Part shown: piece by piece, positions 15,367-64,000 of the stretch
Layout: each line of letters opens with the position of its first letter
How positions within the stretch are numbered: the stretch's first letter is position 1
Assembly: GCA_016748015.1 (NCBI GenBank)
Contig: JAAOMT010000566.1
Span: 1-64,000 of the forward strand
DNA: 64,000 bases
Direction: 5' to 3'
Source of the DNA: Geosiphon pyriformis uo1
Taxonomy: Eukaryota > Fungi > Glomeromycota
The notes under the pieces: model-generated
The model's database searches: none
What the model saw: the letters and a program-made list of their open reading frames with translations, nothing else
Told to the model about the DNA's origin: nothing
Made by a program: the position numbers and the translations under genes

Positions 15367-15680
15367 AATAGTATTTGGATAGTTTTTAATCCAATACTCA
15401 TGGAAAGTATAGAAGGCATTTTGAATGTTTTAATCCAGAAAATAATTGTTTATGTCAATTGAAAATACCTCTGTTTTGGAAATGATGCATTTATTTATAC
15501 TTGATTTTTGTTGATTATTTGAGTCGGTATTACCACAACAGACAACCAATCAGGTCGTTTGTGATATTTCTTGAGTTGCATGCTGTAAACAAGTCGATCA
15601 TTAAAGATTGTTTCAGATTGATCTTGAAGAATATAAGAACCATTGTTCAAAACTTTGTTGACTATAAAAAGTTCTTTCCA

Positions 15681-20780: not shown

Positions 20781-21146
20781 TATGAATTTGGTGATTCAGA
20801 TATTCGAAATCAGGGGGCTGTTGTTCAAAAATTGTGGGATATAAGAGCTGATGGATGCTGGTATTTCTTATTTCAAAATTGTCTTCAAAATAAGCTTGAT
20901 CAAAATAATAGATGGTATAAGCTGTGTAGGTTTCAGCTAAATGCTTGTTTAGAAACCAGTTCCAAAAGTCTTAAAATTGTTTACTGAATTGTTTTTCAAC
21001 AGGGAAACAGATCAAGCAGGAGGGCAGAAGATTGAGTTCAATAAACTCTAGGTCATTTCTGTTGTGTGCTGCAAAGTGTTTTTCTGATTGCTGTGGCAAG
21101 TATGAATAATCACCCATACAATGAGAAAATAAGTGAATTTTGACAA

Positions 21147-21163
21147 CCTCACAGAGAGCACTA
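21147..21163 (-). promoter_or_regulatory. Putative primer-binding site (TAGTGCTCTCTGTGAGG, likely from TGGTGC...)
   Basis: Lies 6 nt internal to the 5' LTR and resembles the complement of an elongator tRNA-Met 3' end. Confidence 0.55.
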
Positions 21164-21169
21164 CTTTTA

Positions 21170-21918
21170 TGTTATGGGTTGGAGTAACAAGCTAACGGAT
21201 AACAAAAAAGAACAGAATTGTAGGGTGATGGAAATAATCAAAGGGGAATTCAACTTTAAAGAGCAAATTGAATGAGTATGGATTCAATGTGCAAGATTAG
21301 TCTCATAAAATATCTCAGTTGCTATTCTTTTCAAAGATAACTGGGGAATCTGAAGGTAGAGGGATAGTCCATACTGTCAAAAATTGATCACCACTGGTAT
21401 AATTCTATGTCTTATGTCAGCACTCTTAGAATTCAATATCAGATATCAACTTGTGCTTTTCAGTCATGTTTATTCAATTAATCTTTAAATGCTACAATTA
21501 TATACGTCAAGAAAAGGCCAACAAGTAATTTTTTATTTTTAAGATATTCAGATACTTGAAGGTAGGGAAAGGGAAATTAGCGATAAGTGAAGGATTGAGA
21601 TGAAAGTTGTTATTTTATTTATTCTTGATTATTCAGATGCTTGTTATTACATGCTTTTCTACAACTAAGAGATTCATCACTTATATAGCTGTCAAAAGTG
21701 GTCAATAATTAGATTAATAATCAGGTCAAAGATCAGGTCAATAATCAGGTCATTGATCAGGTCATTGATCAGGTCAATGATCAAGTCAATGGTCAGGTCA
21801 ACAGTCAGGTCATTGATTAGGTCAATGATTACTTTCTAAAAATTGTGTGGCTAATCATATGACATTAGTGGCTAATACATGTGATAATTAATAAGAAGTA
21901 TAGATTTCAACCATAACA
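21170..21918 (-). repeat. 5' LTR of the Gypsy element
   Basis: TGTTATGG...CCATAACA perfect terminal inverted ends; direct repeat of 14103-14827. Confidence 0.95.
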
Positions 21919-24859: not shown

Positions 24860-27800
24860 TATATGAACTGACACCAAATCACTTATATCCAAAAAGAACA
24901 AGCAAGACTTATGAAAACCAAAATGAACACCCAAAGCATTAGCAATACCAAGTAACCTAACTACTCCTGCAGAGAACCTCGAAGCTAAACCATGAACCAA
25001 GATACTGGCCCAACTATCTAGCAGAATCAGTTCATTCTTCTCTATATATGCATGATGCTTAGCACAGACCGACTAGACTTCCTCCCTGAAAGCAAGACCA
25101 AGAGAGTACACAAACTTGACAATCTCCAAAACAGCAATTTTGGGGTCGTAAAAGATGAAAACAGCTTCACAAAACCAACCATTGAAAACAAAGCCCTTAA
25201 AAAGAGCCATGGACATAGAAGAATCAAAAACACCGGATGATAACAGCTGCAATATACTCGAGGAAGAATGAGAGGAACCAGAAATTGCCTTTCAAGACCC
25301 TACATGAGACTCCAACAACTGATGTCTAACAGACCCATCAACCTTGCAAGAAAACCCATGATCCGACATCTTCACTTCACCACAATACAAGCACAACATG
25401 CTAGGATAACATCTATCATAGAGGTGCTTTCGAACAGCAACTGGCAGCCAATGGTGTAAAGACTTTATAAAGTAAGTACGCATACTGGACGTAGACCTGC
25501 TGATGAAACCTGCCACTATGTGCAAATCAGGATGCCATACCAATGATAAGTGGGGCCAATCAACTTCAGAAGACAAGCCGCCCACCAAAACCCCAGAACC
25601 AAAACCAACCTCCTACTGTGCACGATGAATAGAACGATAAATATCATATACAAAATGCCTCGAATTTCCAGAAACAATGCCACCATCAGCTGATAAAAAA
25701 TGCTCACTCAAGCGAGGGGGAAGATACCAATTAAAGAGAGAAGTGGCACCAGCAATTGCATCAGCATGCTTATTTCCTGAAACACCAGAATGGCTCTTTA
25801 CCTTGTGAAAGCTAACCCTCAACTTCTTACTGCGAATTACGTTGACAATATGATAATGTTCGACCCAACACTGATTACAATAATTGGGATACACCAGACC
25901 CAACTCTGACCTGCAAGCATCCAAAGCCGATTGACTATCTGAGAACAAACAAACAGAGCTTAATAAGGGAATACACTCCATAGTCAAGGCAATGGTCTGT
26001 AATTCTGCCAAAGTAGATGACATCAAACCTGACACACTAATGCCCAAACCCAAACCAATGTCCTCAAAAAAAACAGCAGCACCAGTTCTACAGCCAACTG
26101 TGCCTAGATTACTAAGAGACCCATCCATATATACTGACAGGCTGCTAGCACCAGTTGCCAAAAGATGATCACAAACAGATACAAAATCACCAGACTCAAG
26201 AATGTTTGAAGGCCCACTATCACTCAAAACTAAAGACTGAGCATGAGAAGATTTCACACTATTGAGAAATAAAACAGAAAGCTTGAACCACTCAGGAACT
26301 GGGCCACGGGAGTCCAATCTCTTCTACCTCTTGAAAGTATACCAACTAAAAACAGTACCATGATGGTCACAAAATTGATCCACAAAGGCAATACCATACT
26401 GCCAAAGGGAAGGGAAAAACCTGAGAAACCTTAACTCACCCAGAACCTCAGACATAGGCACTCCACCATGAGATTGAAAGGAACTAATTAAAGAACCACT
26501 CAGAGACACACTGCAATCAAAAAGAACACGAATCATTCTTGCCAAAAAGTTATTAGATGTACTGACACGAATATAAACAGGAAAACTCAACGAATGAACA
26601 GGATGCCAACACAGAACTTGCAAATCATGAGACCTGTGGGAAAACAAACGACCCAAAATACCACCAGAGTTTGCAAAACTGATAAGAGAAGCAATCTTGC
26701 TCTTAGATTGAACTTGAAAAAATGACTTTAAATTATAAAATGAAGGGTAATAAATTGCATCATTAGGGAAATCAAGTGACAAACCAGACTTAAGCTTCAA
26801 GCCTTTATGAATTAGAGCATCCCACTTGTTGTACACATCAACAAGAATAAAACTGAACTGAGTTCTATAGCTGACTATTGGAAACAGAACTGTCAACACC
26901 AAATACAAGAACTGCTTATCTGAGACTACCTTCCTCAACACCAGATTGGTGAAAAAGCGAATGTCTGAATGCGCCTTAATCAGGCTAGGCTTCGAAAGAC
27001 CCTTAGTCGATATGAAAATGCCCAAATATCGGTGAGATTCTCCCCTTTTGGCAATAGAAATGGGCGAACTGCTAATAGAAAGAGAGGGATTGCTAACCCT
27101 GCTATTGATGGGAATGGATATCGTTTTGTCATTATTAATAGAGATGTCATTGACATGAAAAAATTCACTAGCAACATTAAGAATATGTTAAATAGCCATC
27201 TAACTGCTGCCAACCCAAATCATATTATCAACAAAAGCACCAGTGGCGAAAAAAGAAGAAAATCCAGCCTGGAATTCGGAATGACCATTCTTGGAAACAA
27301 AGTGAAAATTCAATCTATATTCACATACACTCTCCTGTCTTTTGACTTCGCACAAAAGAGGATCATAAAATATGCGCCAGAGAAGAGAAGAAAAGACCTC
27401 TCCCTGGTCCAAACCATTGTGCACACAATAACCACTAGTCAATTCAAAATCAGTTATGACTTGGTTGGTATGATCCCCATAAATACCACTAAAAAACCGA
27501 ATAAATTTACTACACATCTTAACCCTGACCAAACTCTTTTCGAGATGCTCCCAGCCAACCAAGTCATACACCTTTCGCATGTTCTGTAGAACCAGCCAGA
27601 GCTCTCTGTTTTTTTCTAAAGCATCCTCAACCACCAAACCAACTGCAAAAACAGGAAACTAGGTTGATGTGCCCTTAAGAACCAAAAAATTCTCCCCTCA
27701 AAGCACGTCAAAAGTACTGCATACCAAAGAAATTCTGTCAGAGAGGATCTTGAAGAGAATTTTGCAAGCTGTTTTGATTAAGGCAATAGGACGTGTGTTC

Positions 27801-29540
27801 GTCAAAACACCTTCCTACTCATAAGGTTTGGGAATCATTGAGACCCATGCTTCTTTCTAAGGGCTGGACACCAATTCACTAGACAAACAAGAGTTCAAGA
27901 GCACCAACAACAAATCTAAAACTGACCTATTACAATGTTTCCAAAGCTTATTTGAAATACCTGACAAACCAGCTGCTTTACCATCCGGAAGATCAGAAAC
28001 CACCCCCAAGGAATTCATCATACTCAATTGAACACATGACACCAGAAAAAGCTCTATCAAAAACATACTCTAGCAGCCGATATTGGAGGTGCCAATCATC
28101 TGAGACATCATCAACCACTCGACGCTTTCTAGTTCAACCTTCCATGATTTCATCTACCTTTGATTTGACAGATTCAGGCTCCAAAACCAACTCATCTCCC
28201 ACAACCAGATGATCTAAGACCACCTTACAAAAGAGATGCTCCAAAACACTCCTAATAGTGTGACCTTTGTCTAGTTCAAAACTCTCCATCCTCTTATCAA
28301 TAGCCTGCTTGATCAAAGATTCTTCAGCTCGTCTGGACTCCAACAACTTAGAAGCACGGTACAACTTTCTTGCTTTGGCCAGTGCAGAATGAATGTGATT
28401 AAAACCAGAACCTGAAAGGAACAGGGACTTTACCTCTGACGCACCAGAAGAATCAAGCTTATCCCAAGTCTCCAACAAAGAAGCAAAATCCCCACCAGAA
28501 ACCAAGTGAGAATCCCTAACCAGCTTAGACACCAGCAGCTCCAGATAATGTAACCTGAACGAAACCTTATTAAAAACACTATCATAACTCTTGAACCACT
28601 TTTTCTTGAATGTCCCACCAGTAGAAAGCACCACAACTTTACGAACAATGTCCCACATAACATCCAGATAAGAAAACTGTTTAGCCACAACAAACTCATC
28701 CAAGAACATAACAGCATTTGCAGCTGTAGCATTCCTGATTTCCGACCACTTAATCTCACTGGTATTTTTAACATCATACTTCCAACGATCCCTATTGGCT
28801 TGCTTGTGCATTGAGTTCAGCTGAACATCGAGCAGGCCACCCAGTCTTACAGAAACATAAACAGCCTTGTGATCGGTATCAAAATATTCCTCAACACCAT
28901 CCACACCACAATCCACCACTGCACCAACCAAATTAGAAGAAACAAACACATAGTCAATAGTCTTAGTAATACCACAAAAATTGCACCAAGTAGGTGATTT
29001 CACAAAAGAGCTCCCCCCCAGAGAGTTAACCAAACCCAAATCAGAACATTTCTTGAAACTGGCACATCTGTGTGAATCATCCTCATTAAAATCACCACCA
29101 AGAATAACAAAGGAGGACTCATTAACGGCTTTAGCAATGAGAGAGTTGATCTCACCAGCCTGAGAAAACCAAGTTACTACTGACACACCAACATAGATCC
29201 CCAAAATAGACACTGAGAGTTTATTTCTGAACAACAATTTGATAGATAGGAGCTGACCAAACACTTCAGAAATCTTGTAGACATGCTTTGCTAAAGAAAA
29301 ATTCATAACGATTAACACCCCAGCACCCGAAGAACCAAAATTCAGACCAGAAGTAAAAACCCGAACACTATCAAATTTGTTGACCAACCACGGATGAACA
29401 TTCCCTTTAAGCTTTGACTCAGTGAAAATAGAAACTAAATTGCCCATATTCTTATGCCAACGAATAACATCATCTTGCTTCGCAGGATTGTTCAACCCAC
29501 GAACATTACACATAGCAATTTTCTACACCAGACCACTCAT
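24860..29540 (-). pseudogene. LINE-B ORF2 (APE endonuclease, RT, RNase H, C-terminal CCHC), interrupted by stops
   Basis: CNVRGLN, ESKL, LGGDFNE, IDYV, TDHKAV (APE); QGEVFSS, FVDNM (RT); YMDGSL, AELQ, SDSQSALD, VKSHSGVSGN (RNase H); CLYCGEVKMSDHGFSC. Confidence 0.92.
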
Positions 29541-31336
29541 TGAGAAAGAGGTAGAGGAAGAGCACTACCTGCCAAAGCCAAACCATCTAGGCGCGCCGAT
29601 AGGCTCATGACTGAAGCAGAGAGACCTTCCAACATGTTTTCCAATTTCACAACCTCAGGTGAGGCAGTCGAACCTGTAACAGCAGCAGTCTTGTCACTAG
29701 TAGCATCATCCGAACTCACTCTCATCACTATATCCTCCCCTTGATTCTGTGATGAAGGGGTCACTGGCAGCTGACATCCAGGACTAGGCTGGGAAACTGC
29801 CAGCATGAATAAGTTCAACCTCTTAGCCAACTTACCAATTTGTCCCGCGAGGCTGACAAGACTGCTTTCAATATTTTTCAAATGGTCTTCCAATTTACCA
29901 CTAACAATCGGGAGAGGTTTACCATAAGATACAGAACCAGATTGAGCTAAACCACTAAATGATGCTAATGGAAGTGGTTTACCAACCACGGAGGCCCAGA
30001 TTTTTCCACCAAAAGCCAAAGGGCGGGAAATGGGAGCAGATTTTTTTTCATATATCTTAGCCAGATGGAGCTGATCCTGAGCTGAGAGAGGAGCTCTCTT
30101 GCTCCTAGGACTTGAGGACACACCAGCACTACAACAAGTGAGAGAAGTATGACCGGAATTTCTGCAAATTGAGCACAGTGCAGTGGTCAAATGAGACCAA
30201 CAGAGACCAACACCTTTTATAACAGGAGTGTTTGCCATTGCCTGAACAAGACTACCCTCAGAATTGAAGCACACAGTGGCACAGTATGCCCGGACATAAC
30301 TGACAGAGCTGCATTCAATAACACATGTTTTCCTATCAACCAAACCAATGAAGTTCCAAAGATCATGAGTGGTGGTATCCATAGGAAGAGTGTAAAGCAA
30401 AGCCCTGAACTCATCTCTGGCATCCCACATTTGTTTGTCAATATCGGCCCGGGCCACACACACTGCATCTTTCCCAATAAGGACAGACTACTTAGCCGCC
30501 AAGAGATCAGCCTGAATTTGATTTTCCAATTTGATAATTGCCTTTTGCCATAGATCCACCAACTGCATTTTAATCGACTTAATAAGTCCAAATTCAGAAA
30601 TGGCTGCACACACTGTCTCAATGGAAGTTCCCACAGGGATTTTTTTCAACACAATTGCCCGATTCATACGATTGTTGATGGGGCACTTAAGATTGGTGTT
30701 TACCACAACACCACGATCATTTGCCAATTGAGCAGCCACTATCATCGCCTTTTCAGAAGTAAAAGACACCTGGATGATTCCACCAAATTTTGAGGGAGCA
30801 GAGACTCCCCCAAAACCATTTACATCTGAGAAAATTTTTCTGACAAAGTTCAATTTCTCCTGAGATGATTTTCCAGCAACAGCCATGAGATCAATATCTA
30901 AAACAAAGAACTTGCGAACAGGCACTTGAACAGATGGTTTGATAGGCAAAGGGGGTGGAAGAAGGAAGGAATCATCTAACACGTCATTGTCTACATCAAC
31001 AGTACCATAATCAATTACACCCAGAGGCTTCCCTAATACTTTTTTGGTCTTTACACACAAATTCTTAGGCGTTTAATCAGGATTCCCTCCTGTGAAAGCA
31101 CCATTCTCACCATAGTCAACACTGGTTTCCTCAACCAAGCACTCCTTTTCCATGTCAATACTCTCAGATTCAGTAGTGTCACCCACCTCAGAATCCCATG
31201 AACAATTACCAAGAGCTTTATAAACAACCTTACTATTATTCACACTCTCTGCCAATACACCACTCTTTCTCTTCTTCCTCGATACAACCGTCTTAAAACC
31301 ACTCTCAGAACCAGAAACTTTGGTAGTCTTCTTCAT
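29537..31336 (-). pseudogene. LINE-B ORF1 (gag-like, RRM-like segment plus CCHC knuckle), two in-frame stops
   Basis: Fragments 31073-31336, 30488-31060 and 29537-30463 share one frame. CSICRNSGHTSLTC knuckle; C-terminal coiled-coil-like segment. Confidence 0.85.
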
Positions 31337-47607: not shown

Positions 47608-49262
47608 CTAATTATTATTATTATTATTATTATTTTCATAAATTTTCTGAGCTAAAAAATTTCTGAATTTACTCATTGATTCGCAATTGTTCATTTCAAT
47701 CCCAAAATAAGGCCCATTATGAAATAATTTGTTCGGAACTTCGTTTATTGATTGACCAGCATTACACTCCTAAAGTAAAAAAAAAGAAAAAAAGAAAAAA
47801 AAAAAACTTATTTTTTTCAATGCCTTTGCTAAAAATTTCTTAATTCAATATAAATTATTACTAACCACATTCTCTTCAGGATACTGCGAATTAAACCATT
47901 CTTCACTTTGACTTGACATCAAAGGAAAAGAATTACAATCCCAATACGTATTTGAGTCATCAGGACAATTACAATTACTCAATGGTTCAATCCAAATTTC
48001 AGTACCAAAATGTCTCCACCCCATTGAAGACGAAGGAGAGTGTGGCACATGATCATTTCCATGGGTGAAGCGACGATGAAGAATTAATTGGTTGAAACTA
48101 TCCCTAAAGTGCTCGTTTCCAACTCTCGGAGCCCCAAAAGTATAAATACTCTGCCCTATACCGCTTAAATTAATATCCGGCCAAATATTCATATTTAAAA
48201 TTTTATATCTTTCAAGTAACCACCTCACTGCAGCAATGCAAGCATATGCTTATATATATATATATAATAGTTAAAAAAAGATTTAATGTTAAAAAAATAA
48301 TTTTATAATTTTTACTTCAAACTTTAAAATAAAAGACATTTAAGAAACTAACCTCCACAAATACCATGTCCCGTAAATACAATATTAAGGTTTTGAGTTA
48401 GCTTTGTAAATTTCATTAAAAATAATTTAATACTTTGAAGTAAATTAGGAAATAATAAATCCAAATCTTTCAATAATTGTGAGTCTGCACGAAATTTTTC
48501 GTCAAACTTTGGAATATTTTTAAAATGAAGTGGCACTTGTTTTGAATTTCTAGAAGCCCATTCTTCTTTCGTTAATTTCTAATATAAATAAAGAAACATT
48601 GTTATTTCGAAATTTTAATTGATTTAAAATATTAAAGGAGTTAAAGATAATTACTGATCCTCCAAACGCTATTATTAAAAGGCCATCAGTTTCTGAATCT
48701 AAGTAAAACTGAACCGCCACTAATAAATAGTATTTTGAAAGCTATTAGTTTTTGTTTTTTTTAAAAAAAAATTTAAATTTCAAAATAATTTCTTTTTCTG
48801 AATTTAAAAACCTTTAATTTGTAAACCAGGCACTCTTGAGCCAACGTTATTTAGACCGAGACAGTCAAATGCATTTACTATGAATGCAATATACGAGGAA
48901 ATTTTTAGCTCACTATTATCAAATAAAATTCGGCTCTTAGGTTGTGATTGTGAGCGTTTTTTGGTTTTATTAATTTTTTGTGAGATATTGATTTGATTTA
49001 TCCAATTAATCATTGTAGGAGAGGTGTAATTTATATCTGCTTTTTTAAACTTTTGAATTACTTTAGAGGCTATCCAGATACTGCTGTGGTTTTCATGAAT
49101 CAAAAAATAAAAAATTAATGCTATAAAAATTGCAGTAATAATCTTAAATTTTCTTGAAAAATCGACCTTGAATCGTATTTGATTATTAAAAGAACCCATT
49201 TTATTGATTTTCAAGATGGATATAATAGAGTTTTTATGGAATTTTTTTTCAAGATGCACCAA
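47608..49262 (-). CDS. Lipase class 3-like protein L1 (multi-exon; nucleophile elbow TGHGICGA, no catalytic Ser)
   Basis: N-terminal hydrophobic segment; YTFGAPRVGN, DHVPH, HFGTEIWI; last exon ECNAG...HNGPYFG, stop at 47608. Start may be the ATG at 49199. Confidence 0.85.
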
Positions 49263-50174
49263 TTATTAAAAAAAGATCTATAGATCGAGCTTAATTGTTT
49301 GTTTAAAACATCTCATTTAAACAAAATAAAGTAATAAATAATATAATTTTAATATCTATCACACTATATCTTGTATCCCCAAAGAAGTTTTCAAATTTTT
49401 ACAAATTTATAAACAAAATTATTTAATTTTATTTTAATTTGAAAATAAGATTTTATTTCAGGTTTATTTAATAAATACATTAAATGAGATATTTAATTGA
49501 AATATTAATTAATGAGAAAAAGTATTTCACTTCATTGATCTTTTAGAAAAAATATTTTTAAATAATTGCTATAGTTTTTGGTTTTAGACTTTAATCATCT
49601 AAAGTGAAACATTTCAATATTTTATGTAGAAAAAGTTTTAAAATTCTAACTTGACTTCGACTTTATTTATTAAATAAAAGAAATCGAAAGCTTTACGGAA
49701 GAATAATCAGAATTACAGCGCTCCAAGATTCCCCGATGGTTTCATTGTGTATCATTGTAAATGAATACAGTAGAAAAAATATTAAAAATTTAATTTCAAT
49801 AAGAAGTTAAATCATTATATAAAACCAACTATTTGGAAATGAGAACTTTTCATATTTAATAATTATTAAAATCCGGCAAGCTTTAAAACTTAAATTTGGA
49901 AAAAAATCTATATATTACTTTTAAATTGATCTGAAAAACCTCTTTTTTTTTAATCATTCTGGAAAATGAATATTTGATTTAGCTTTTAATAATTTCAAAA
50001 AGTTGAAAGTTTTTTGTCAACAAATAAATCTAATGATCTCGACTATTATAAATAATAATAATAATAATAATAATAATGAAATTTAAATTTGATATTAAAA
50101 ATAAAAAAATTTAAAAAAATATATTTTAAATTAAATAATAATAATAATAATAATTTAATGGTATAATTCTTTTA

Positions 50175-50206
<32 letters not shown>

Positions 50207-50834
50207 CTTGTGTACAAAATAAGTTTAAAAAATATTGTGTATTTTATGTTAAAAAATGAAAAATGAAAAAAAGATATTATATAAAACAAAAAGTAAAAAT
50301 ATTATAATTTTATGTTTGAATATAAATTTTATTTATTATTTTATTATTTTATTATTTTATTATTCCTTTAAATTCTTGAATAAAATTGATAAACTTGTAC
50401 AAAGATTACTTTTATCAATATATATATTTTAATTTATATAATATAATTATTTCAAAAAAATTTACTTTGTAAAAAAAAGTTTTGTCGGTCATAAATTTTG
50501 TTTTGAATCTACCTGTGTTTATGTTCTTGTCTTTTTGATAAAACTTTTTAAACTTTATTTATAAATAGATAGTTATAAATAGTTTCTATCAGCCTATCCT
50601 ATTTTCCAAAAACGATTTTCTTTCATCATTAATTTTTTACCGCTAAAAAGATCAATAAATAATTCTAACCAATCTCATCAAAACGATATATCAAACCCCC
50701 AATTTTTCAGTGTAACATGTTAACTTGGGAATCTGTATTTTTTTTAAAATTTTAATAAACTTTACCCCTTTATATTAATATAAACATATATTCATTATAT
50801 CTACACGCGATGACTAAACTCTTAACCCAAGTTT

Positions 50835-50840
50835 AATAAT

Positions 50841-50876
<36 letters not shown>

Positions 50877-50879
50877 AAC

Positions 50880-50917
<38 letters not shown>
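50835..50917 (+). repeat. Compound (AAC)n(AAT)n microsatellite just upstream of L2
   Basis: Direct reading. Confidence 0.9.
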
Positions 50918-50919
<2 letters not shown>

Positions 50920-50935
50920 GTTGCTTAATTACATT

Positions 50936-52448
50936 ATGAGTTCATCAATCAAAAATCACCACACATGCTCAATGAAGAGTTCTTCTTTTATATTCCTTTT
51001 CAATCTGCTTGCAATACTTGTGCTTTCTCAAGATAGTTTGAGAAATTTAAATTTAACCAATCTGGACGGAAATTCTAGGTATTTTTTTTAAAAAAAAGGT
51101 GATATAAAACTGTTTTCGAGACTTATGAAAAAAAAAAAATAATAATTTCATCAATTTCCATAATAGACTTCTTTCTGATAAAAAAGAATCTATCACCGTT
51201 AAGAATAAGACGAAGCCGAACGCGAGCGACGACGACGACGAAAGGTCTGAAGACCAAGAATTTCTAGAAAAAACCTACCACCAAAAAATTGAACAGTCTA
51301 GAGCAAAAAATCAAATCATTTTTCAGTCAAATCAAAAAAGAAATTCCATAATTCAACCTATCTCAAAAATTAGGAAAGATATATCCATCCTGAAATATCT
51401 AACATATGCGAGACACAACAAAAGGCTCTATTGTTCACCAAAACGAGTAGTTAAATTTATAGAAAATTTGGATCTCACAGGTTTTTTTTTTCACCATATA
51501 AATTTTTTTTTTCAGTTCCTAAAACTTTATTATCACTAAAATTAAATGAATAATTTGGCTCTTCTTTAGGGAGAGTACATAAAACATTTAATAATCTTAT
51601 ATTTTCCCTGAGAGCTCCTGAAATACGTTACTTAAGTACGTGGTCTAAGGAACGAGAAAATATACTTGTACCTTATTTGGAAGTTAAGGACGCAAGAGTG
51701 GATAAAAAATTTTACCAGGATTTTCAAATAGTCTCTCAGGAAATTCAGTCATACCTTTTAAAAATCATGAAAACTGGCAACCAGAGATATTTTATTTTAA
51801 CTGGACATCGATTAGCGGGCGGTCTGATGATTTATTTATTTATTTATTTCTTGAAATATTTGAGAATTAATGATTAAGATACTTCAAGTTTTTGTTCTTT
51901 CTTTTTTTCAAAAATACAGTTTATGCGATATTTACGGCACTAATGATGAAAAATATACCCTCTTCAATTAAAACATTTAATGTCTTCACTTGGGGATCTC
52001 CGCGGTTTGGGAATGCCGCATTTGCAAATCATGTCAATTCTGTTTTAAATGTCCGTCGAGTAACTTTGATGGATGACCAAATCACAAGGTTCCCAATTTA
52101 TACCAGCACATCAGATTTAACTTCGTATCTACATCCTGGGGAAGAAATATGGATAAAGAAAAAATGTGATTGTGATAATTTCGAATATTTTAATTGTCCG
52201 GGGGTGAAGGAGAAAGATGAGTTGAAAGAAAGTCCGGTATGCTATATATTTATAAGAGATTTATAAAAATTTTGGCTTTTTTTGTTGTTGTTAAACCTTG
52301 ATTAAAAAAATTAAAAATTTATAAATATTTTTGATTTTTACAGTTTTGTAATAATTCTCAACCAGAGCATGACCCAGATTTTACATATGATGGTCCCTAT
52401 TTTGGTTTTATATTTGGTCATCAATACCAAATTTGTGAAGAAGTCTAA
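50936..52448 (+). CDS. Lipase class 3-like protein L2 (multi-exon; elbow TGHRLAGV, no catalytic Ser)
   Basis: ATG at 50936 with signal-like FIFLFNLLAILVLS. Open exon ~51167-51480. FTWGSPRFGN, DDQITRFP, HPGEEIWI; last exon ...DGPYFG...EEV stop. Confidence 0.85.
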
Positions 52449-52742
52449 TATATATATATATATATGTATATATTAGATACCTAAATTTTAAATTCACTAT
52501 TTGAAAATATAAATATTTATTAAAACAACTGTCTTTTACTTAAGAAATCAGATATTCTAAAAAAATATGCATGAAAAAATTTTCTGATTAATTATCATCT
52601 CTAGTATTTTTCTGTCTTGTTATTGAATTATATAAATTTAATGCAAAAAAAAAATTTCAAAATTTTAATTTATCTTTTATTACATTATTCAAAGCATATT
52701 TCTTTTTAATAAACTAAAAATTAAGAATTCTCAAAACTTGTT

Positions 52743-53680
52743 CTAATTTAGATATCTTTTTTTGAAACAATTTTTAAACATTGTTCGCCCAAAATATGGA
52801 CCAAAATGCTCATGATCAAGATGGGATTCTCTATAAATTTTGATTGAATCTTGAAAATTTATTCCTGGATATATGGCTTTATGCAAATGATTTCTTGCAT
52901 TGCAATCCTAAACAAAGTTTTGAAATTTTTTTAATTTTAAAATTATTAAATAGGAAATGAATTATAAATTTATCGATTTTTAAAATTACCTCATGTTCAT
53001 GTAATGTATGCGTATGATAACATATATAAATCTTTGAATTTGGACAATCACATGAAGGAGGTTCTATCCAAAACTCTTTTTGAGAATGTCTGTATTGAAT
53101 TTTGGTTAATTTTGTTGTTGTTGTTGTTGTTGTTGTTATTTCTTTAGGCATATTTATTCCACGAAAAAATCCTTCAATTGGAAAATTAGGTATCCAATCA
53201 TCACCATAAGTCACCCTCCAAACTTTATGTAACATATGTTGAACGTAATGAACGAATATTTCATTTCCAATTCTTGGCTGGCCGAAAGTAATCACGCTTA
53301 CGGTGGCTTCCGTATTATTTCTTTTATATTCAAGTGCAGCAAATACAGCTAAAGCTAAAAAAATTTAAAAGAGGTTAACAGTGAAAATTTTTAAATTTTT
53401 ATTGTAAAAAAAAATTCGCAAATTCTTTTTTACCGGCTCCAGTACCAAAGCCTGTAAATAAATATTCATTCAAATTATTTTCCCTTTCATACTTTTCAAA
53501 TTTCGTCGAGAAAAGTTCTCCCCGAGATTGCCAAAATTTATAAAGAAATCTGGAGACTAACCCATATTGTACAGGTGGGTAAGGAATAAAATCCCATACT
53601 AATCCGCCTATACCAAATTTTAAATAATCAATGTTATCTTCGACAGCACTAAAAGCGATTATACTGCTTGAAAACTTCAC

Positions 53681-53722
<42 letters not shown>

Positions 53723-54259
53723 AATAAATGAAAAAGTTTAGCTTCAAGTAATTTTTTCGAAAAAACAAGAATAATTTTTTTACTAACCCCAAGCCCTAGC
53801 AGCTGAACGACGATTCGCGAAAAAATCATTTGTCGCTTTTTTGATAACTTGTTGGCAAGTTGCCTCCCAGGCAAATTTTGCACTTTCTGATAGTTGACGC
53901 AAAACATTTTCATCTTCAACAACCATTTTTACCATGGCAAAATTTGTATCATAATCTCCATCACCATCACCACCACCATCACCATCACCACCATCACCAT
54001 TATCACCATCAATATCACCACCTTCAATATCTGCTATTGTAGCCACTGTATTATTAAGAGTGAATTGGAAATTTCTTTTTTGATTTGATTGAATTATAAA
54101 ATAATTTTGTTTGATGTGAGATTTATTATTATGGAATGACTGTGAACGAAAAATGATCTCCGTAATAGATGGACTTTTATTATGAAAATAAAAAAGAAAA
54201 ATTAGAGGCAACAAGGAAAAGAATGCGTGCGGCCAAATAATTTTCACAATATAAAACAT
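52743..54259 (-). CDS. Lipase class 3-like protein L3 (multi-exon; elbow TGFGTGAA, no catalytic Ser)
   Basis: Signal-like N-terminus and Gly/Asp repeat; ITFGQPRIGN, DDWIPNFP, HSQKEFWI; last exon DCNAR...HFGPYFG, stop at 52743. Confidence 0.85.
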
Positions 54260-54660
54260 TCTAATTTTTGAAAAAGTTCCGCGTAGTTTGAGTTGCTTCA
54301 AGTAAAAAATATCTTGACCATAATTTAGCTCAAGAGATTTGATTTTAAAATTTTTTTTTTCCTAATTAGGATATTCTTATCAAGATTTTTTTATAAGGCT
54401 GCGGAAAAAATTTTTGAATTTTTTCTCAAAATAAATATTTACATAATTTCTAAATACATGGAAAATCTCGGTCTTTGAAATTCTTCCGATTAATAAATAA
54501 ATATATAAATATTTTTCTGAAATACATTGAGTTATCGCATCATGATCGTCCTAAATAAAAAATTAGCGTTATTTTCCGCATGATAAAGAATTTTAAAAAA
54601 GTGTTTACTTCAAAAATTTAGAATATATAAACACTGACATCAGTGTAAACAATTCAAATT

Positions 54661-54689
54661 CCTCCCCTCCCCTCCCCTCCCCTCCCTCC
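54661..54689 (+). repeat. (CCTCC)n tract in the L3/L4 divergent intergenic region
   Basis: cctcccctcccctcccctcccctccctcc ~40 bp upstream of the L4 ATG, downstream of a TATATAAA at ~54624. Confidence 0.8.
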
Positions 54690-54730
54690 ACTTTTAACTT
54701 GAAAATTTTTTAAAAGGTGAAGAAAGAAGA

Positions 54731-54855
54731 ATGATTTCTCAGAGAAAACACCTAATGACTAAGGAATTCTACGCGAGGCTTAAAAAACTTTCTCTCAAAA
54801 GATTTATTTCTATTATTCTTTTTTTTCTTCTTTTATTCTTTTTATCCCATCTAAG

Positions 54856-54891
<36 letters not shown>

Positions 54892-56316
54892 GTTAGATCA
54901 AAATCTTTTTGATTATCCCCTAGAAAATATAAAAAAATTTGATTTCTTTCATCACTCTGAGCCAATTTTAAAACTCAAAAAAAATTTAACAAAAGATATT
55001 GCAAAATTCGAAATTTCACTTTTCCAAGAAAGAAATTCTTTTGGCCCCATTTTTATAAAAGATTTAGTCGATGATCAGAATCTTTTGGAATTATTTTCTA
55101 CCAAAGCAAATTTTGCCAGGATATCACATTGTTCCCTAAAACAGTTACTACTATCAGGAAAAGGTGAGAATCGGACTTCTTGCGTTGAAATATAGATTAT
55201 AATATTTTAATTCATTTGTAAATTTTTTCAAAACAGTTTTCTCTGATGCTTTGGTTTCCATTATGGAACACGATCATTCAAAATTGACTCTAAGTTTTGC
55301 ACATATTAATAACAATAATTTTGAAAACACGCGATCCCGCATATCGCAGATTTTTAGAGTCGTTCAATTCCCAGATGTAACTGGTGCTTGGGTAGCAGGC
55401 ATATACCTCCGCTTATGGAAAATTTATTTTCAGAAAAAATTTTTGGGGGGGCTTCAAAAATTTTTGTCAAATTCACTGAAGAAATATGATTATTCTGATT
55501 TTTATTTCACTGGATTTGGCCAAAGTTGTCGTAAGTTTTGAGTTTATTCATTAAAAGAATAAATTAAAATTACTTTGGACTTTCGAATTTAATGTTTTTT
55601 GAATTAGCATATGCAATTTTTGCTGCCCTGAAATTTTTGGAAATCTATAAACCTTCAAAAAAACCTATCGTTGTTACTTTTGGCCAACCGAGAATGGGAA
55701 ATGAAGTTTTTACCGCTTTTGCTCAAACCAAACTTGAGGCAAGAAATTTTCCATTTGATTTTTGTTCCCAATTTGTTTCTGAAGATTTTGCTAATAATGT
55801 CTTTAATTGAAATCGAAAAACAAGATTTTTCGTGTTACACTTATGGATGATTGGTTACCAGATATCCCCATACAAGGAAGAAGATATTTTTCAAAATGGG
55901 ATGATACAAACAAAAGGCCAACGAGTTTAGTGCTTCCTGTAAAAGAAAGATATACACATTTCAAACCTGAATTTTGGATTGAAATTAATTGTGAATGTTC
56001 ACAAGACATCTACCCAACTGTGTACAAATGCTTGAACACCCATTCATTCGATGAACATCCGGTATGAATTTGATATTTAAATGTTAATAGAAAATCTCTA
56101 AAATATTTTTGCCCAAATTCCATTTTTTCTCAACCTCTTTAGGAATGCAATGCTCGTAAACATGAGATCAACATTTCACATGGCTTTCTGCATGAAAATA
56201 AATCCGATGAATTTCATTTTGGTCCGTATTTTGGACAAAACATGAATGATTGTCAAAATTTAAATAGAACTATGATTAAAGGTATAATCTTACAAAAAAA
56301 AGTACCAACCTTTTAG
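54731..56316 (+). CDS. Lipase class 3-like protein L4 (multi-exon; elbow TGFGQSCP, canonical Ser position is Gly)
   Basis: N-terminal TM/poly-Leu; VTFGQPRMGN, DDWLPDIP, HFKPEFWI; last exon ECNAR...HFGPYFG, stop at 56316. Confidence 0.85.
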
Positions 56317-58078: not shown

Positions 58079-58750
58079 ATTATATCAAATTTTTTAAGTC
58101 ATTATTAAAAATGATACTTTTTTTATATATGTTTTAGTATTTTATATTATATATAATATTGAAATTGTAATAAATTTACTTTTTTAACGCAATGTAGATT
58201 AAAACACTTGACTTTAATACAAAGAAAAAAAATTATTTATATATAATTTTAGTAATTATAATGATCGTGGTCAGAGATTGTGATTTCTAGTAAAATTTAA
58301 TAAAAAGTTCTTTTGAATTATTGTGTTTAACAGCTAATTATCAAGCTTCTGAGATCAGGAATAGCATTTTCTTACAAAATCCATTATTCAATAGTAAATA
58401 GCCAAAAATCTGAGATTTTTGATGCAAGATTTCTATCATTTAATTTCCTCAGTTAATAATTATTTTTAGTTAAATTTATAAATTAATTTCTTTCTTTGAC
58501 TTGAGGGCAAAAGAAATTTTAGTTTTTAAAAAATGAACGAGCCTACAACTTTATCAAAAAATAATATTTTTTATTTTGAACAGCAAATCTGAAAATTCTA
58601 ATATGATAGAAGTCTATTATAAGAATTGAAAGCTAAACCATTTATAAAGACATTTTTTATCTATTTGAGATTTAATTTTGATATTTTCATAACTTATATT
58701 AAAAATATTTTATTTAAAGACTAATCAGATAGAATGCATCGCAATAATAC

Positions 58751-59847
58751 CTAATAGAGATTACTATTATCGTTAAAGCCTCCGTTAATAGTACCAGAGG
58801 AAAAGTGACCATTTTGCTGGTTACCAATGGATCTCTTATCGTTGAAACCTCCATTAATTGTCCCAGACGAAAACTGACCGTTTTGTTGATTACCGATGGA
58901 TCTTTTATCATTGAAACCTCCGTTAATTGTACCAGACGAAAAGTCACCATTTTGTTGGTTACCTATGGATCTCTTATCGTTGAAACCTCCATTAATTGTC
59001 CCAGACGAAAACTGACCATTTTGTTGATTACCGATGGATCTCTTAGTGTTGAAACCTCCATTAATTGTCCCAGACGAAAACTGACCGTTTTGTTGATTAC
59101 CGATGGATCTTTTATCATTGAAACCTCCGTTAATAGTACCAGACGAAAACTGACCATTTTGTTGATTACCGATGGATCTTTTATCATTGAAACCTCCGTT
59201 AATTGTACCAGACGAAAAGTCACCATTTTGTTGGTTACCTATGGATCTCTTATCGTTGAAACCTCCATTAATTGTCCCAGACGAAAACTGACCATTTTGT
59301 TGATTACCGATGGATCTCTTAGTGTTGAAACCTCCATTAATTGTCCCAGACGAAAACTGACCGTTTTGTTGATTACCGATGGATCTTTTATGTTGAAACC
59401 TCCATTAATTGTCCCAGACGAAAAGTCACCATTTTGTTGGTTACCTATGGATCTCTTATCGTTGAAACCTCCATTAATTGTACCAGACGAAAACTGACCA
59501 TTTTGCTGGTTACCAATGGATCTCTTATTGTTGAAACCTCCATTAATTGTCCCAGACGAAAAGTCACCATTTTGCTGGTTTCCAATGGATCTTTTATCAT
59601 TGAAACCTCCATTAATAGTACCAGACGAAAAATCACCATTTTGCTGGTTACCAATTGCATTGGAATTATATCCTAATCTATCACCATTATGGTTGAAGCC
59701 TCCGTTAATAGTACCATGGGAAAACTGGCCGTTGTTCTGATTACCGATACCCCTCTTTGCATTTAATGCAGCTGCACTAGACGTTGAAAATGTAGACAAG
59801 AGAAAAATAGCTGTGCAAATTTGTGTAATAAAAATTTTACCAGTCAT
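58751..59847 (-). CDS. Kex2-processed repeat peptide precursor, copy A (14 core units; one 1-nt frameshift at ~59390)
   Basis: Signal peptide MTGKIFITQICTAIFLLSTFSTSSA, then AKR, then 69-nt repeats SIGNQQNG(Q/D)FSSGTINGGFNxKR, ending FNDNSNLY-stop if the single-base deletion is corrected. Confidence 0.85.
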
Positions 59848-60820
59848 TTTAATCAATCTTAGTGTTTTTAAGGCTTTTAAAAAAATGTATTGGAAAGATT
59901 TCTTTTAGATGTTTTAGAGTGTGAATGAAGAGATNNNNNNNNNNNNNNNNNNNNATTGGGAGCATCAAAAATTAGATATGCTTGGCTAAACAAGTTTCAC
60001 CATTCATGATAACATGAACTAATAGTCCTCAAAATATTTCAGAGTTTTCCCTAACCTGGTAAAAAAGATAGAAATAACGCGAAAACTGTTTCTTTAATTC
60101 TGTATAATTAACTTGACTTAAACGACATTTCAAATTTAAAAACCTATATTTTAGTTTTTACTTGGAAATGTTTAAAATATTTATCTACGGAGGGTGGCTA
60201 TAAGTTACCAAACAATTAAATAACCAATAAAGAAATATAAATTAAAAACTTACACCAATAAACTATTTAATTAATTTATTACACATTATTAAACGAATTT
60301 TTTGTTCTCGTACATTGAATTAAGAAAAAATGGTGTTTACTACAATTGGAAAATTTTTAGTTTAGTCTAATACTTATTTTTGATTTTCCCAATAAACTGT
60401 TCGTTTCGTTTCCTATTATGGTCTGTAGTGTTCTTTCTTTCAAATATAATCTATTTATAAAAAACTTGAATCAATAGCACTTTGCTACAGTATAACTAAA
60501 TGAGTATATTTTTAAATTGGAGAGATACATAATTATATGCGTATTTTGCGTTTTACCAGGATCTATCGAGCACCAACCTATTCTTTCTCATCATGAAAAT
60601 TTCAAAAAAAGGCTAGTGCTTGGTCATTCTTGCGGCCTAAATGAAACCTTTTCGATAAAGGTACAAGCCATCTTTTTCAAGGTTGATTTCAATGGTAACC
60701 GCATGCTTAGCGAAAACTTTGTTACCATAGGAGACCTAAATGAAATACCGAGAAGAAAAACAGTCATATTTAAATTGAATTTGTTTCAAAATTAAACCGA
60801 GCATGAGAATGGGAAAATGG

Positions 60821-60828
60821 TATAAAAG
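60821..60828 (+). promoter_or_regulatory. Putative TATA box for precursor copy B
   Basis: TATAAAAG ~115 bp upstream of the ATG at 60936. Confidence 0.45.
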
Positions 60829-60935
60829 AAGAGGTTCGCCTGTTCAATATCTCTTCATTCACACTCTAAAACATCTAAAAGAAATCTTTCTAATACATTT
60901 TTTTAAAAGCCTTAAAAACACTAAGATTGATTAAA

Positions 60936-61664
60936 ATGACTGGTAAAATTTTTATTACACAAATTTGCACAGCTATCTTTCTCTTGTCTACATTTTCAAC
61001 ATCTAGTGCAGCTGTATTAAATGCAAAGAGAGCTATCGGTAATCAGAACAACGGCCAGTTTTCCCATGGTACTATTAACGGAGGCTTCAACAATAATAGT
61101 GATAGATTAGGATATAATTCCAAAGCAATTGGTAACCAGCAAAACGGTCAGTTTTCGTCTGGGACAATTAATGGAGGTTTCAATGATAAGAGATCCATCG
61201 GTAACCAGCAAAATGGTCAGTTTTCGTCTGGTACAATAAATGGAGGTTTCAATGATAAGAGATCCATCGGTAACCAGCAAAATGGTGACTTTTCATCTGG
61301 TACAATTAATGGAGGTTTCAACGGTAAGAGATCCATCGGTAACCAGCAAAATGGTGACTTTTCATCTGGTACAATTAATGGAGGTTTCAATGATAAGAGA
61401 TCCATCGGTAACCAGCAAAATGGTGACTTTTCGTCTGGTACAATTAATGGAGGCTTCAACACTAAGAGTGACTTTTCATCTGGGACTATTAATGGAGGTT
61501 TCAACGAAAAGAGATCCATCGGTAACCAGCAAAATGGTGACTTTTCGTCTGGTACAATTAATGGAGGTTTCAACGATAAGAGATCCATAGGTAATCAACA
61601 AAATGGTCAGTTTTCGTCTGGTACAATTAATGGAGGCTTCAACCATAATGGTAATCTCTATTAG
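60936..61664 (+). CDS. Kex2-processed repeat peptide precursor, copy B (intact, 242 aa; 8 full core units plus 1 truncated)
   Basis: Intronless ORF with signal peptide, KR-delimited 23-aa repeats and C-terminus FNHNGNLY. Confidence 0.92.
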   Translation: MTGKIFITQICTAIFLLSTFSTSSAAVLNAKRAIGNQNNGQFSHGTINGGFNNNSDRLGYNSKAIGNQQNGQFSSGTINGGFNDKRSIGNQQNGQFSSGTINGGFNDKRSIGNQQNGDFSSGTINGGFNGKRSIGNQQNGDFSSGTINGGFNDKRSIGNQQNGDFSSGTINGGFNTKSDFSSGTINGGFNEKRSIGNQQNGDFSSGTINGGFNDKRSIGNQQNGQFSSGTINGGFNHNGNLY

Positions 61665-61907
61665 GTATTATTACGATGCATTCGGTTGTATTTTATCTGA
61701 TTAGTTTTTAAATAATATAATTTAGGAAAAGATCAAAATTAAATCTCAAATAGATAAAAAATGCCTTTATAAATAGTTTCGCTTTCAATTTTTATAATAG
61801 ACTTCTATCATATCAGATTTTAAATTTTGTTATTTGATACAAATAACGCTATTTTTTTTGGGTTTAAAAATTTTCAATCAGTTGCAANNNNNNNNNNNNN
61901 NNNNNNN

Positions 61908-62531
61908 AACCAGCAAAATGGTCAGTTTTCGTCTGGTACAATTAACGGAGGTTTCAATGATAAAAGATCCATCGGTAATCAACAAAACGGTCAGTTTTCG
62001 TCTGGGACAATTAATGGAGGTTTCAACAATAAGAGATCCATTGGTAACCAGCAAAATGGTCAGTTTTCGTCTGGTACAATTAATGGAGGTTTCAACGATA
62101 AGAGATCCATTGGTAACCAGCAAAATGGTCAGTTTTCGTCTGGTACAATTAATGGAGGTTTCAATGATAAAAGATCCATCGGTAATCAACAAAACGGTCA
62201 GTTTTCGTCTGGGACAATTAATGGAGGTTTCAATGATAAAAGATCCATCGGTAATCAACAAAATGGTCAGTTTTCGTCTGGGACAATTAATGGAGGTTTC
62301 AACACTAAGAGATCTATTGGTAACCAGCAAAATGGTCACTTTTCCTCTGGTACAATTAACGGAGGTTTCAATGATAAAAGATCCATCGGTAATCAACAAA
62401 ACGGTCAGTTTTCGTCTGGTACTATTAATGGAGGTTTCAACACTAAGAGATCCATCGGTAACCAGCAAAATGGTGATTTTTCGTCTGGTACTATTAACGG
62501 AGGCTTTAACGATAATAGTAATCTCTATTAG
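61908..62531 (+). CDS. Kex2-processed repeat peptide precursor, copy C (5' end lost in gap; 9 units visible)
   Basis: In-frame repeats from the gap edge to FNDNSNLY-stop. 3' flank is homologous to those of copies A and B. Confidence 0.85.
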   Translation, partial: NQQNGQFSSGTINGGFNDKRSIGNQQNGQFSSGTINGGFNNKRSIGNQQNGQFSSGTINGGFNDKRSIGNQQNGQFSSGTINGGFNDKRSIGNQQNGQFSSGTINGGFNDKRSIGNQQNGQFSSGTINGGFNTKRSIGNQQNGHFSSGTINGGFNDKRSIGNQQNGQFSSGTINGGFNTKRSIGNQQNGDFSSGTINGGFNDNSNLY

Positions 62532-63211
62532 GTATTATTGCGATGCATTCTATCTGATTAGTTTTTAAATAAAATATAGTTAATATAAGTTATGAAAATA
62601 TCGAAATTAAATCTCAAATAGATAAAAAATGCCTTTTATAAATAGTTTTGCTTTCAATTCTGATAATAGACTTCTATCATATTAGATTTTAAATTTTGTT
62701 ATTTGAAACAAATGACGTTATTTTTTTGGGGTTTAAAAATTTTCAATCAGTTGCAAATCAAGATAAATAGTTTTTATTCTTAATAAAAATGCAATTTTAA
62801 TGAAATTGTAACAGTTGTAATATCATTCTTAAATAAAAAATATAACTGATTTCTTATTTTTAATGGATTATTCTTAAGATTGTTTTCATTTAACTATATC
62901 TTATTCCATTCTTTTTTTCTCATCATCTCTCACCTGTAACAATATCATTACTGGAATTATAAAAATAAAACTTGGTCAATCAATATAATTTAGTTCAAAA
63001 AGTTTGAATTAACTTCTTATATAATAAAAAAACAACTCAATTTAAAACTTAAGAAATTCTAAAATAGTTGCTTTTCTCGGGAATTGGATATAATACCAGA
63101 ATAATAACCATATCTAATTTTCTTATTTAGTATTGAAACCTTCATTAATCAGACAAAATATATACATACTTTACCTACATTATCGTTGAAGCTGTCGTTA
63201 TTAGCACTTAC

Positions 63212-63212
<1 letters not shown>

Positions 63213-63272
<60 letters not shown>

Positions 63273-63289
63273 TTAATAATAAAAACAAC

Positions 63290-63323
<34 letters not shown>
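63213..63323 (+). repeat. (AAT)n microsatellite
   Basis: Direct reading; explains the spurious poly-Ile ORF. Confidence 0.9.
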
Positions 63324-63328
<5 letters not shown>

Positions 63329-64000
63329 GTTCAGTGTGTGATGAAACAATTAACTTTTTGAATTGATCATGAATTTAAAATAATATTAAGTTTACATTTT
63401 TACTTTTGGATTTTTTACACGATCAGCTTTAAATCAAAGAATAAAGTTCAGTTAAAGATTTTTTTGAACAGTATTTTTTATTGATCATTTATTGAATTTA
63501 AATATTTTAATAAAATGAAGCGAAATTAAATAAGGACAAAAATAAATGGGGCTTTTTTAAATCAATTTTCATTCTGTTGGAAAGAAATTTTAATATAGAA
63601 TTATTTATTCGCATAAAAATAAAAGAATTGCTGATTATTGAAGAATTTCTTCTTTTTTCTCAAGGATCTCTGATTTATTTTAACATCATCTTTATACCAA
63701 GCCAAAGATGAAGTAGTTTAGTGATGAAAAATTTGTTGAAATTTTCCAATGAGAAATCATTATAATATGGCTAAGAATTAGAAATCCACTAAAATATCGC
63801 GTTTTTTGATGATTACCATAAAAAGTATCCTTGGGATCCTTATGCCAAATCCTCTAGCCGCAATAGAATAATTTGCGATTCATTTTTATTTTAGAAAAAG
63901 ATATTTTTTGAAAATTAAAAGATAATGACAGAAATGGTTTTGATGTCTTTGATCTTTTTAATCAAATAGTAAGCCATTAATTTTAATTGATACACGAAAC

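Follow-up and report, generated by a model that had tools for sequence, protein, structure and literature searches.

What do three arrays of a 69-nucleotide (nt) repeat near a chromosome end of Geosiphon pyriformis encode? The stretch of DNA analyzed here (the window, 64,000 nt) corresponds to positions 1–64000 of contig C549 in a genome of 128 Mb assembled into 792 contigs, and the arrays occupy positions 58751–62531. An earlier interpretation made from the letters alone (the sequence-only reading) had assigned them to a probably symbiotic fungus of the Glomeromycotina and had taken them for precursors of secreted peptides. The organism is indeed Geosiphon pyriformis, and two relatives of the encoded proteins, KAG9291947.1 and KAG9291973.1, are encoded on the same contig as the cluster. 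Judging from its sequence features, the cluster probably consists of three paralogous Geosiphon genes that encode secreted polyproteins, precursors of the type known as Kex2-processed repeat proteins (KEPs). It is very likely that these are real genes for secreted repeat proteins delimited by Lys-Arg (KR).

The arrays are paralogous and repeat a unit of 23 amino acids (aa) far above chance. Tandem Repeats Finder returned a period of 69, with copy numbers of 12.9, 4.8 plus 2.6, and 8.8, scores of 1338, 574 and 915, and 88–95% matches. In the coding frame the unit reads [S/A]IGNQQNG[Q/D/H]FSSGTINGGFN[D/N/T/G/E]KR, and the translations agree with the KR-delimited 23-aa consensus that had been proposed. 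The features of the cluster, and one further gene beyond the window, are as follows.

58751–59847, minus strand: copy A, ATG at 59847, stop at 58751–58753, 14 units, with a 1-nt frameshift as assembled.
59389–59391, minus strand: point at which copy A lacks one nucleotide, within codon 21 of its fifth unit; the plus strand reads GGATCTTTTATGTTGAA here.
59935–59954: assembly gap, 88 nt upstream of the copy A ATG, in the promoter or leader.
60821–60935, plus strand: upstream leader of copy B, with a TATAAAAG box at 60821–60828, 115 nt before the ATG.
60936–61664, plus strand: copy B, 242 aa and a stop, the sole open reading frame (ORF) of the three that is intact from signal peptide to stop.
61888–61907: assembly gap, with the non-coding 3′ flank of copy B on its left and the middle of the copy C array on its right, the 5′ end of copy C being missing.
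61908–62531, plus strand: copy C, a 5′-truncated array of 1 partial and 8 whole units, ending in DNSNLY and a stop.
C549:76960–77712, 13 kb beyond the window: copy D, an intact gene of the same type (type 1), 250 aa.

The numbers of units that had been predicted (14, 8 plus one, and at least nine) match those counted, with 14 SIGNQQNG-type units in copy A, 8 units and one truncated unit in copy B, and 8 whole units and 1 partial unit in copy C; the degenerate first motifs of A and B come in addition. The prediction of a cluster of three precursors needs qualification: the arrays are present, but copy A is frameshifted as assembled, copy C lacks its 5′ end and only copy B is intact. The protein of copy B begins with MTGKIFITQICTAIFLLSTFSTSSAA and continues with VLNAKR, the signal peptide covering about aa 1–26. 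Its predicted first product of 52 aa consists of two motifs linked by NNSDRLGYNSK in place of KR; six standard 21-aa units follow, then one fused unit, in which a KR was lost through an internal 24-nt deletion, and a last unit that ends in HNGNLY and the stop without KR. In the head of copy A, the signal peptide is followed by a KR-terminated propeptide and a degenerate first motif, which a KR-free linker joins to the first standard unit. From the ATG its frame runs into the fifth unit, and the remaining 9 units are read in another frame down to the stop; the open frame upstream of the break spans 59239–59856 and the second one extends to 58751. Contigs from public sequencing runs (described below) reported no indel at this site, read coverage of the exact site not being shown. 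Copy C opens in the middle of a unit at 61908, right after the gap, and lacks a start codon, a signal peptide and the first units. Since the 3′ flanks and the synonymous patterns of A, B and C differ, they represent separate loci and not one copy assembled three times.

The signal peptide, assessed by inspection and hydropathy only, has Lys in the n-region, a hydrophobic core of 14 residues (ITQICTAIFLLSTF, Kyte-Doolittle 11-residue mean up to 2.2) and a c-region of small residues, STSSAA, after which comes the propeptide VLNAKR. A signal peptide, a propeptide closed by KR, a KR at each unit and a last unit without KR together fit the definition of a KEP, and it was this Kex2-processed repeat architecture that the sequence-only reading had recognized. 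KEPs are defined by at least three near-identical motifs, each with a dibasic site, by an N-terminal endoplasmic reticulum (ER) signal peptide and by a kexin in the organism. Such motifs are found in the 30 internal units of copies A–D, the signal peptide is present, and the genome holds a kexin, whose P_proprotein domain (PF01483) was detected above the cut-off (53 bits) at C608:604583–604753, inside an open frame of 468 aa.

Under the proposed mechanism, the N-terminal signal peptide would carry the precursor into the ER. Kexin in the late Golgi would cleave after Lys-Arg, first behind the propeptide VLNAKR and then behind each 23-aa unit, and a Kex1-type carboxypeptidase would trim K and R. 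Each copy would release one 52-aa two-motif product and many linear 21-mers of the form SIGNQQNG[Q/D/H]FSSGTINGGFN[D/N/T]. In-silico digestion of the window copies with Kex2 and Kex1 gave SIGNQQNGQFSSGTINGGFND as the main 21-mer (9 copies, 2140.941 Da monoisotopic), besides a D9 form (4 copies, 2127.909 Da) and a T21 form (4 copies, 2126.962 Da); the predicted mass of the 52-aa first product is 5401.451 Da. The 21-mers are acidic to neutral, rich in Asn, Gln and Gly, and free of Cys, Pro, Lys, Arg and N-glycosylation sequons. No STE13 X-Ala/X-Pro spacer stands after KR, the units beginning with Ser-Ile or Ala-Ile.

Selection on the units was assessed in the 30 internal units of copies A, B, C and D. 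Over all 23 codons, the proportions of synonymous (pS) and non-synonymous (pN) differences were 0.31 and 0.037, giving a dN/dS of ~0.09; with codons 9 and 21 excluded they were 0.33 and 0.005, and for these two codons alone 0.05 and 0.335. Nineteen nucleotide columns vary, 14 of them at third codon positions, and synonymous change was found at 12 of the 23 codons. K-R stands at all 30 internal junctions, where the Lys codon alternates between AAA and AAG while the residue never changes and Arg is likewise unchanged; KR is lacking from the final unit of every gene. Gene conversion among units can make them more alike, but an imbalance of this kind between synonymous and non-synonymous differences is beyond its reach, which argues that the peptide sequence and the dibasic site are held by selection. 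To judge from the codons, the exact peptide and its KR sites are under strong purifying selection, whereas positions 9 and 21 are free or diversified.

Further members of the family were found elsewhere in the genome, in line with the claimed amplification by both unit number and gene number. They are listed below together with two small ORFs that share only the leader.

C727:169198–172194: type-1 head-to-head pair, of which the member at 169198–169923 encodes the same protein as copy B and its partner is placed behind a run of 1468 N.
C549:403269–404339: type-2 gene, 356 aa.
C549, about 396.2–397.0 kb: type-2 gene, gapped.
C778:100817–101077: minimal gene, in which a signal peptide and PRR precede a single two-motif unit that is followed by KR and a short tail.
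C357:377716–377967 and C354:104983–105252: small ORFs with the shared leader, a pair of 83 and 89 aa in that order.

The type-2 unit has 54 aa and comprises two motifs linked by DNSGR[Y/N]GYNSNS, with KR after every second motif only. In the KR-free relatives KAG9291947.1 and KAG9291973.1, three degenerate motifs (xGNxNNGxxSxGxINGSxN) precede a Cys-containing C-terminal domain. In the alignment of all six members, the motif columns G, N, N, S, G, I, N, G and N are invariant. Because the two-motif form persists in the first product of type-1 genes, the 23-aa unit appears to have arisen by expansion of the second motif together with KR. From this comparison of sequences, the family looks as if a two-motif protein had evolved step by step into a polyprotein.

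Besides this family, the genome contains a separate large set of secreted repeat genes of a GNGN type, some with KR or KRD sites, including the following.

C615:349136–350569: GNGN-type gene, 478 aa, 3 KR.
C580:252718–254208: GNGN-type gene, 496 aa, 10 KR.
C615:331749–334973: GNGN-type gene.
C701:154408–155214: GNGN-type gene.

The leader of copy B recurs near-identically upstream of D, of the C727 copy and, up to the gap, of A, and in the upstream alignment (B positions 70–170) all aligned columns but one are invariant. Conservation of the TATA box and leader among the copies supports their interpretation as genes for KEP-type precursors. At the protein level, the leader made of signal peptide, propeptide and KR also heads the small ORFs on C357 and C354, whose mature parts are unrelated; one of the two has a Cys-containing mature part with further KR sites. 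The B-type leader is also 50% identical over 28 residues to that of a GNGN-type gene on C615. A common leader on differing mature parts suggests, at the level of sequence, a shared cassette for secretion and processing.

How far do the assembly gaps affect this picture? Ahead of A, B, D and the C727 copy the sequence is near-identical up to the gap at 59935–59954, so this gap cuts the promoter or leader and touches no coding frame. The sequence on the left of the gap at 61888–61907 reappears downstream of copy C at ~62720–62760. This gap offers no frame continuity, and ORFs spanning its Ns (61827–62531 and others) were rejected as artefacts. The segment 59955–61887, which carries copy B, is an island between both gaps and is 98.9% identical over 1346 nt to C727:168972–170315, so that its placement and orientation in the scaffold are unproven. 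No contig of the three public runs considered next spans 59935–59954 or 61888–61907. Contigs of two of these runs, X1 and X2, leave unit 2 of copy B at window position 61223 into unrelated sequence (TTTCCGAAAACAGTCACGAACTATCACATA), which could come from another locus, a vector or a chimeric contig.

Are the genes expressed? Three public runs of the same sample, X1 (DNA), X2 and X3 (both with a type labelled only "DNA?"), were compared with positions 58300–63000. X1 covers the whole of this interval. X2 and X3 lie on the coding repeats alone, and their depth is zero in every intergenic bin, all of which X1 covers. Their exact pieces of 43–111 nt fall on copies A and C at a word depth of 30–74, the longest (111 nt) on A. 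Pieces that are 90–95% alike reach depths of 11,182 to 47,537; being only that similar, these deepest pieces derive from paralogs. The pattern is suggestive, as it is what RNA or cDNA would give, and it would also fit the abundance reported for the GpRIC transcripts of Geosiphon (see below) in a cDNA library. Expression is what we infer from it.

With regard to annotation, copies B and D, the type-2 gene, the minimal gene and the tested GNGN-type genes were absent from the public protein collection by exact look-up, and the non-repetitive relative KAG9291973.1 was present in it. The genome annotation evidently overlooked the tandem-repeat genes, probably due to tandem-repeat masking; the same point has been made for AGL genes (PMC8786786). 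This bears on the view that the cluster is decaying or silent subtelomeric repeat DNA, i.e., pseudogenes or assembly duplicates without a product. Such a view could draw on the frameshift of A, the truncation of C, the position of B between two gaps and the missing annotation, and also on the finding that no run on record as RNA holds cluster DNA, which was present in one study only. It is countered by a dN/dS of 0.09 with synonymous change at 12 of 23 codons, by the conserved promoters shared by the intact copies B, D and the C727 copy, by flanks that are distinct among copies, and by the common loss of tandem-repeat genes to repeat masking, as reported for AGL genes (PMC8786786). Silent repeat DNA is therefore considered very improbable.

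The main rival of a processed precursor is an uncleaved Gly/Asn-rich cell-surface protein, disordered or beta-solenoid-like, in which KR would provide charged spacers. AGL and intrinsically disordered protein (IDP) families of Glomeromycotina have been proposed as uncleaved surface-type proteins by Schultz et al. (PMC8786786), and the mature part of copy B, with 21.9% Gly, 19.0% Asn and 0% Pro, falls within their "GN-rich IDP" class, to which GpRIC also belongs (an ER signal peptide, Gly and Asn each at 15% or more, little Pro). Homologous motifs without KR in KAG9291947.1, KAG9291973.1 and the type-2 linkers point in the same direction. AlphaFold2 (AF2), run on a small family alignment, predicted two short strands or a beta-hairpin per unit, stacked continuously and regularly along the whole array, but with low confidence (pLDDT 55, pTM 0.47). 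On the other hand, KR stands unchanged at 30 of 30 junctions and is lacking precisely in the C-terminal unit, the propeptide is closed by KR as well, and the protein has neither a glycosylphosphatidylinositol (GPI) signal nor a Ser/Thr-rich stalk. An uncleaved surface protein is thus a possible but rather unlikely alternative.

Several observations nevertheless weigh against processed precursors. Copy A is frameshifted and copy C incomplete. The absence of KR from the motifs of KAG9291947.1 and KAG9291973.1 and from half of the type-2 motifs indicates that the motif can work uncleaved, and the stack modelled by AF2 would equally suit an uncleaved repeat protein. X2 and X3 do not cover the 5′ leader or start of copy B, their deepest pieces are paralogous and the kind of run is guessed. 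At the predicted cleavage site the P4 residue is Asn, and Kex2 favours an aliphatic residue at this position. Cleavage and free peptides, moreover, are deduced from sequence only. Taking both sides together, actual cutting of the precursors into free peptides is still the outcome that we hold to be probable.

Would such precursors form a new kind of system? Surveys of 250 and of 1461 fungal proteomes have catalogued KEPs by thousands, Glomeromycotina included, and KEPs are frequent in Mucoromycota and in Rhizophagus (Le Marquer et al., 2019, PMC6339444; Umemura, 2020, PMC7329392). The window genes resemble them in the signal peptide, the near-identical KR-ended short units, the presence of several units per gene and several genes per genome, and a unit length within the commonest class of 9–24 aa. 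They differ in that their units have no STE13 spacer, which most KEPs of R. irregularis possess; Geosiphon was sequenced after both surveys, and the core motif is not found in the supplements of PMC6339444 and PMC7329392. The window family therefore adds to a known fungal class and is not a new kind of system.

Searches for relatives of the core gave little. Comparison of copy B with Pfam, NCBIfam and Protein Data Bank sequences yielded noise only. In an exhaustive phmmer search of 1.84 billion protein representatives with copy B, the only true match was the KR-free paralog KAG9291947.1 (E = 1.9e-4). Other matches, of MORN and LRR types, were dismissed as chance repeat proteins. A word-index protein search with copy B and with the type-2 gene, limited by its length window and word index, returned nothing; no relative of copy B was found in the ESM Atlas, and none of 141 pattern matches in Joint Genome Institute (JGI) metagenomes was confirmed. 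Contigs encoding family sequences were also sought by exact match, and none came up. The core, described beforehand as unrecognized, is accordingly absent from the two KEP catalogues, Pfam, NCBIfam, the Protein Data Bank, the 1.84 billion representatives (its own paralog apart) and the JGI metagenomes. The further suggestion of an undescribed peptide stands insofar as the core is without a match in these searches, but its novelty was overstated, as KEPs are known by thousands and GpRIC1–3 had been reported.

Gly/Asn-rich secreted disordered proteins were described by Schultz et al. in the early-diverging Ambisporaceae and Paraglomeraceae (PMC8786786). In the portions of that paper that cite Hoffrichter (2018), GpRIC1–3 of Geosiphon are characterized as Gly/Asn-rich, with KR di-motifs read as Kex2 sites, and as making up 22.3%, 5.0% and 3.0% of cDNA library reads (PMC8786786, Table S9 note). 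The GpRICs are also reported to resemble GNGN-type cDNAs from Paraglomus and Ambispora by BLASTn and to have ORFs of 456 and 470 aa (PMC8786786). The window genes share with GpRIC the species, the ER signal peptide, the Gly/Asn-rich mature part and KR di-motifs as Kex2 sites. Compared by description only, however, the reported ORF sizes and cDNA likeness suit the GNGN-type genes on C615 and C580 better than the SIGNQQNG genes. Alignment of copy B with the C615 gene was confined to the signal peptide, and the type-2 gene did not align with the C580 gene. Protein searches with copy B, the type-2 gene and a GNGN-type gene returned no protein named RIC; the last of these retrieved only the Geosiphon hypothetical protein G9A89_006378 and weak matches, which leaves undecided whether the database searched contains the GpRICs at all. 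It is likely that the GNGN-type genes on C615, C580 and others are the GpRIC genes. That the window family is already one of the GpRICs seems unlikely, and it is treated here as a separate branch of the same broad class.

Rep1 of Ustilago maydis is a Kex2-cleaved repeat precursor whose peptides of 35–53 aa form amyloid-like fibrils on aerial hyphae. Like the predicted window precursors, it is a secreted polyprotein with similar peptides cut at KR; its peptides are surface material and not a hormone, and the Asn/Gln/Gly-rich, beta-prone composition of the window peptide would suit self-assembly. However, the two have no sequence similarity and the Rep1 peptides are longer. The Saccharomyces alpha-factor precursor MFalpha1 likewise combines a signal peptide, a KR-ended pro-region and tandem units freed by Kex2 and Kex1, whereas the window genes are without Ste13 dipeptide spacers, their peptide is unrelated and their pro-region is much shorter. 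Unlike for MFalpha1, we know of no link of the window peptide to mating.

Ustiloxin-type precursors have KEP architecture too (PMC7329392), which raises the alternative of a precursor of peptides made by ribosomes and modified post-translationally (RiPPs) of dikaritin, ustiloxin or borosin type, cyclized or modified after Kex2 cleavage. Unlike ustiloxin and dikaritin precursors, the type-1 core contains Phe but neither Tyr nor Trp for an ether cross-link, nor does it offer Cys or Pro to cross-link. No peptide-modifying enzyme was found among the ORFs neighbouring the cluster, where class-3 lipase paralogs and retroelement remains were found instead. Neither UstYa (DUF3328, PF11807) nor tyrosinase had been seen in the window by the sequence-only reading, and neither profile had a match in the whole genome, an absence that is weakly shown since the control genomes were silent too. 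A RiPP precursor is regarded as extremely improbable.

The cluster lies ~58 kb from the chromosome end, and the CCCTAA repeats at window positions 1–250 bear out the subtelomeric site that had been proposed. These repeats and a unique stretch at 781–1004 recur near-identically at 1025–1200 and 2027–2250, with a gap at 1005–1024 between them; this doubled telomere and subtelomere is probably the result of scaffolding two telomeric contigs or haplotypes one after the other, head to tail. The region that separates the cluster from the telomere contains retroelement remains (Exo_endo_phos, RNase H, RT_RNaseH and integrase), a kinase fragment and class-3 lipase paralogs. Within 14000–31000, RT_RNaseH and integrase come from a long terminal repeat (LTR) element, and Exo_endo_phos and RNase H from a long interspersed nuclear element (LINE). 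Lipase paralogs flank the cluster on both sides (window 47608–56316 and C549:64188–65732), and several ORF fragments near it match Pfam Lipase_3. A long (AAT)n microsatellite is located immediately downstream of the cluster at 63216–63330.

With regard to the role of the peptide, the leading guess, by analogy with the Rep1 repellents, is that it is extracellular, beta-prone and self-associating and acts at the surface of the hyphae or of the symbiosis; second to this comes a role as a diffusible signal. A bolder proposal is that the 21-mers, with their invariant scaffold and with positions 9 and 21 kept variable on purpose, are lineage-specific extracellular peptides of Geosiphon at the fungus–Nostoc interface, serving as an amyloid-like symbiosome matrix or as a signal for cyanobacterial differentiation, and distinct from GpRIC and any described fungal peptide. 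We consider this unlikely.

Geosiphon is the only known fungus with cyanobacteria (Nostoc) inside its cells and, among living organisms, the closest model of how arbuscular mycorrhiza arose, and its most abundant transcripts are reportedly those of KR-bearing Gly/Asn-rich repeat proteins. To these the cluster adds a distinct and strongly constrained peptide family that is absent from public annotation, a gap that touches any secretome or effector count built on the published gene set. The peptide sequences and their precise masses can be used for peptidomics, which makes the processing hypothesis testable. The interest of the family rests on its selection pattern, on an apparently stepwise evolution from two-motif protein to polyprotein, and on the unique symbiosis of Geosiphon.

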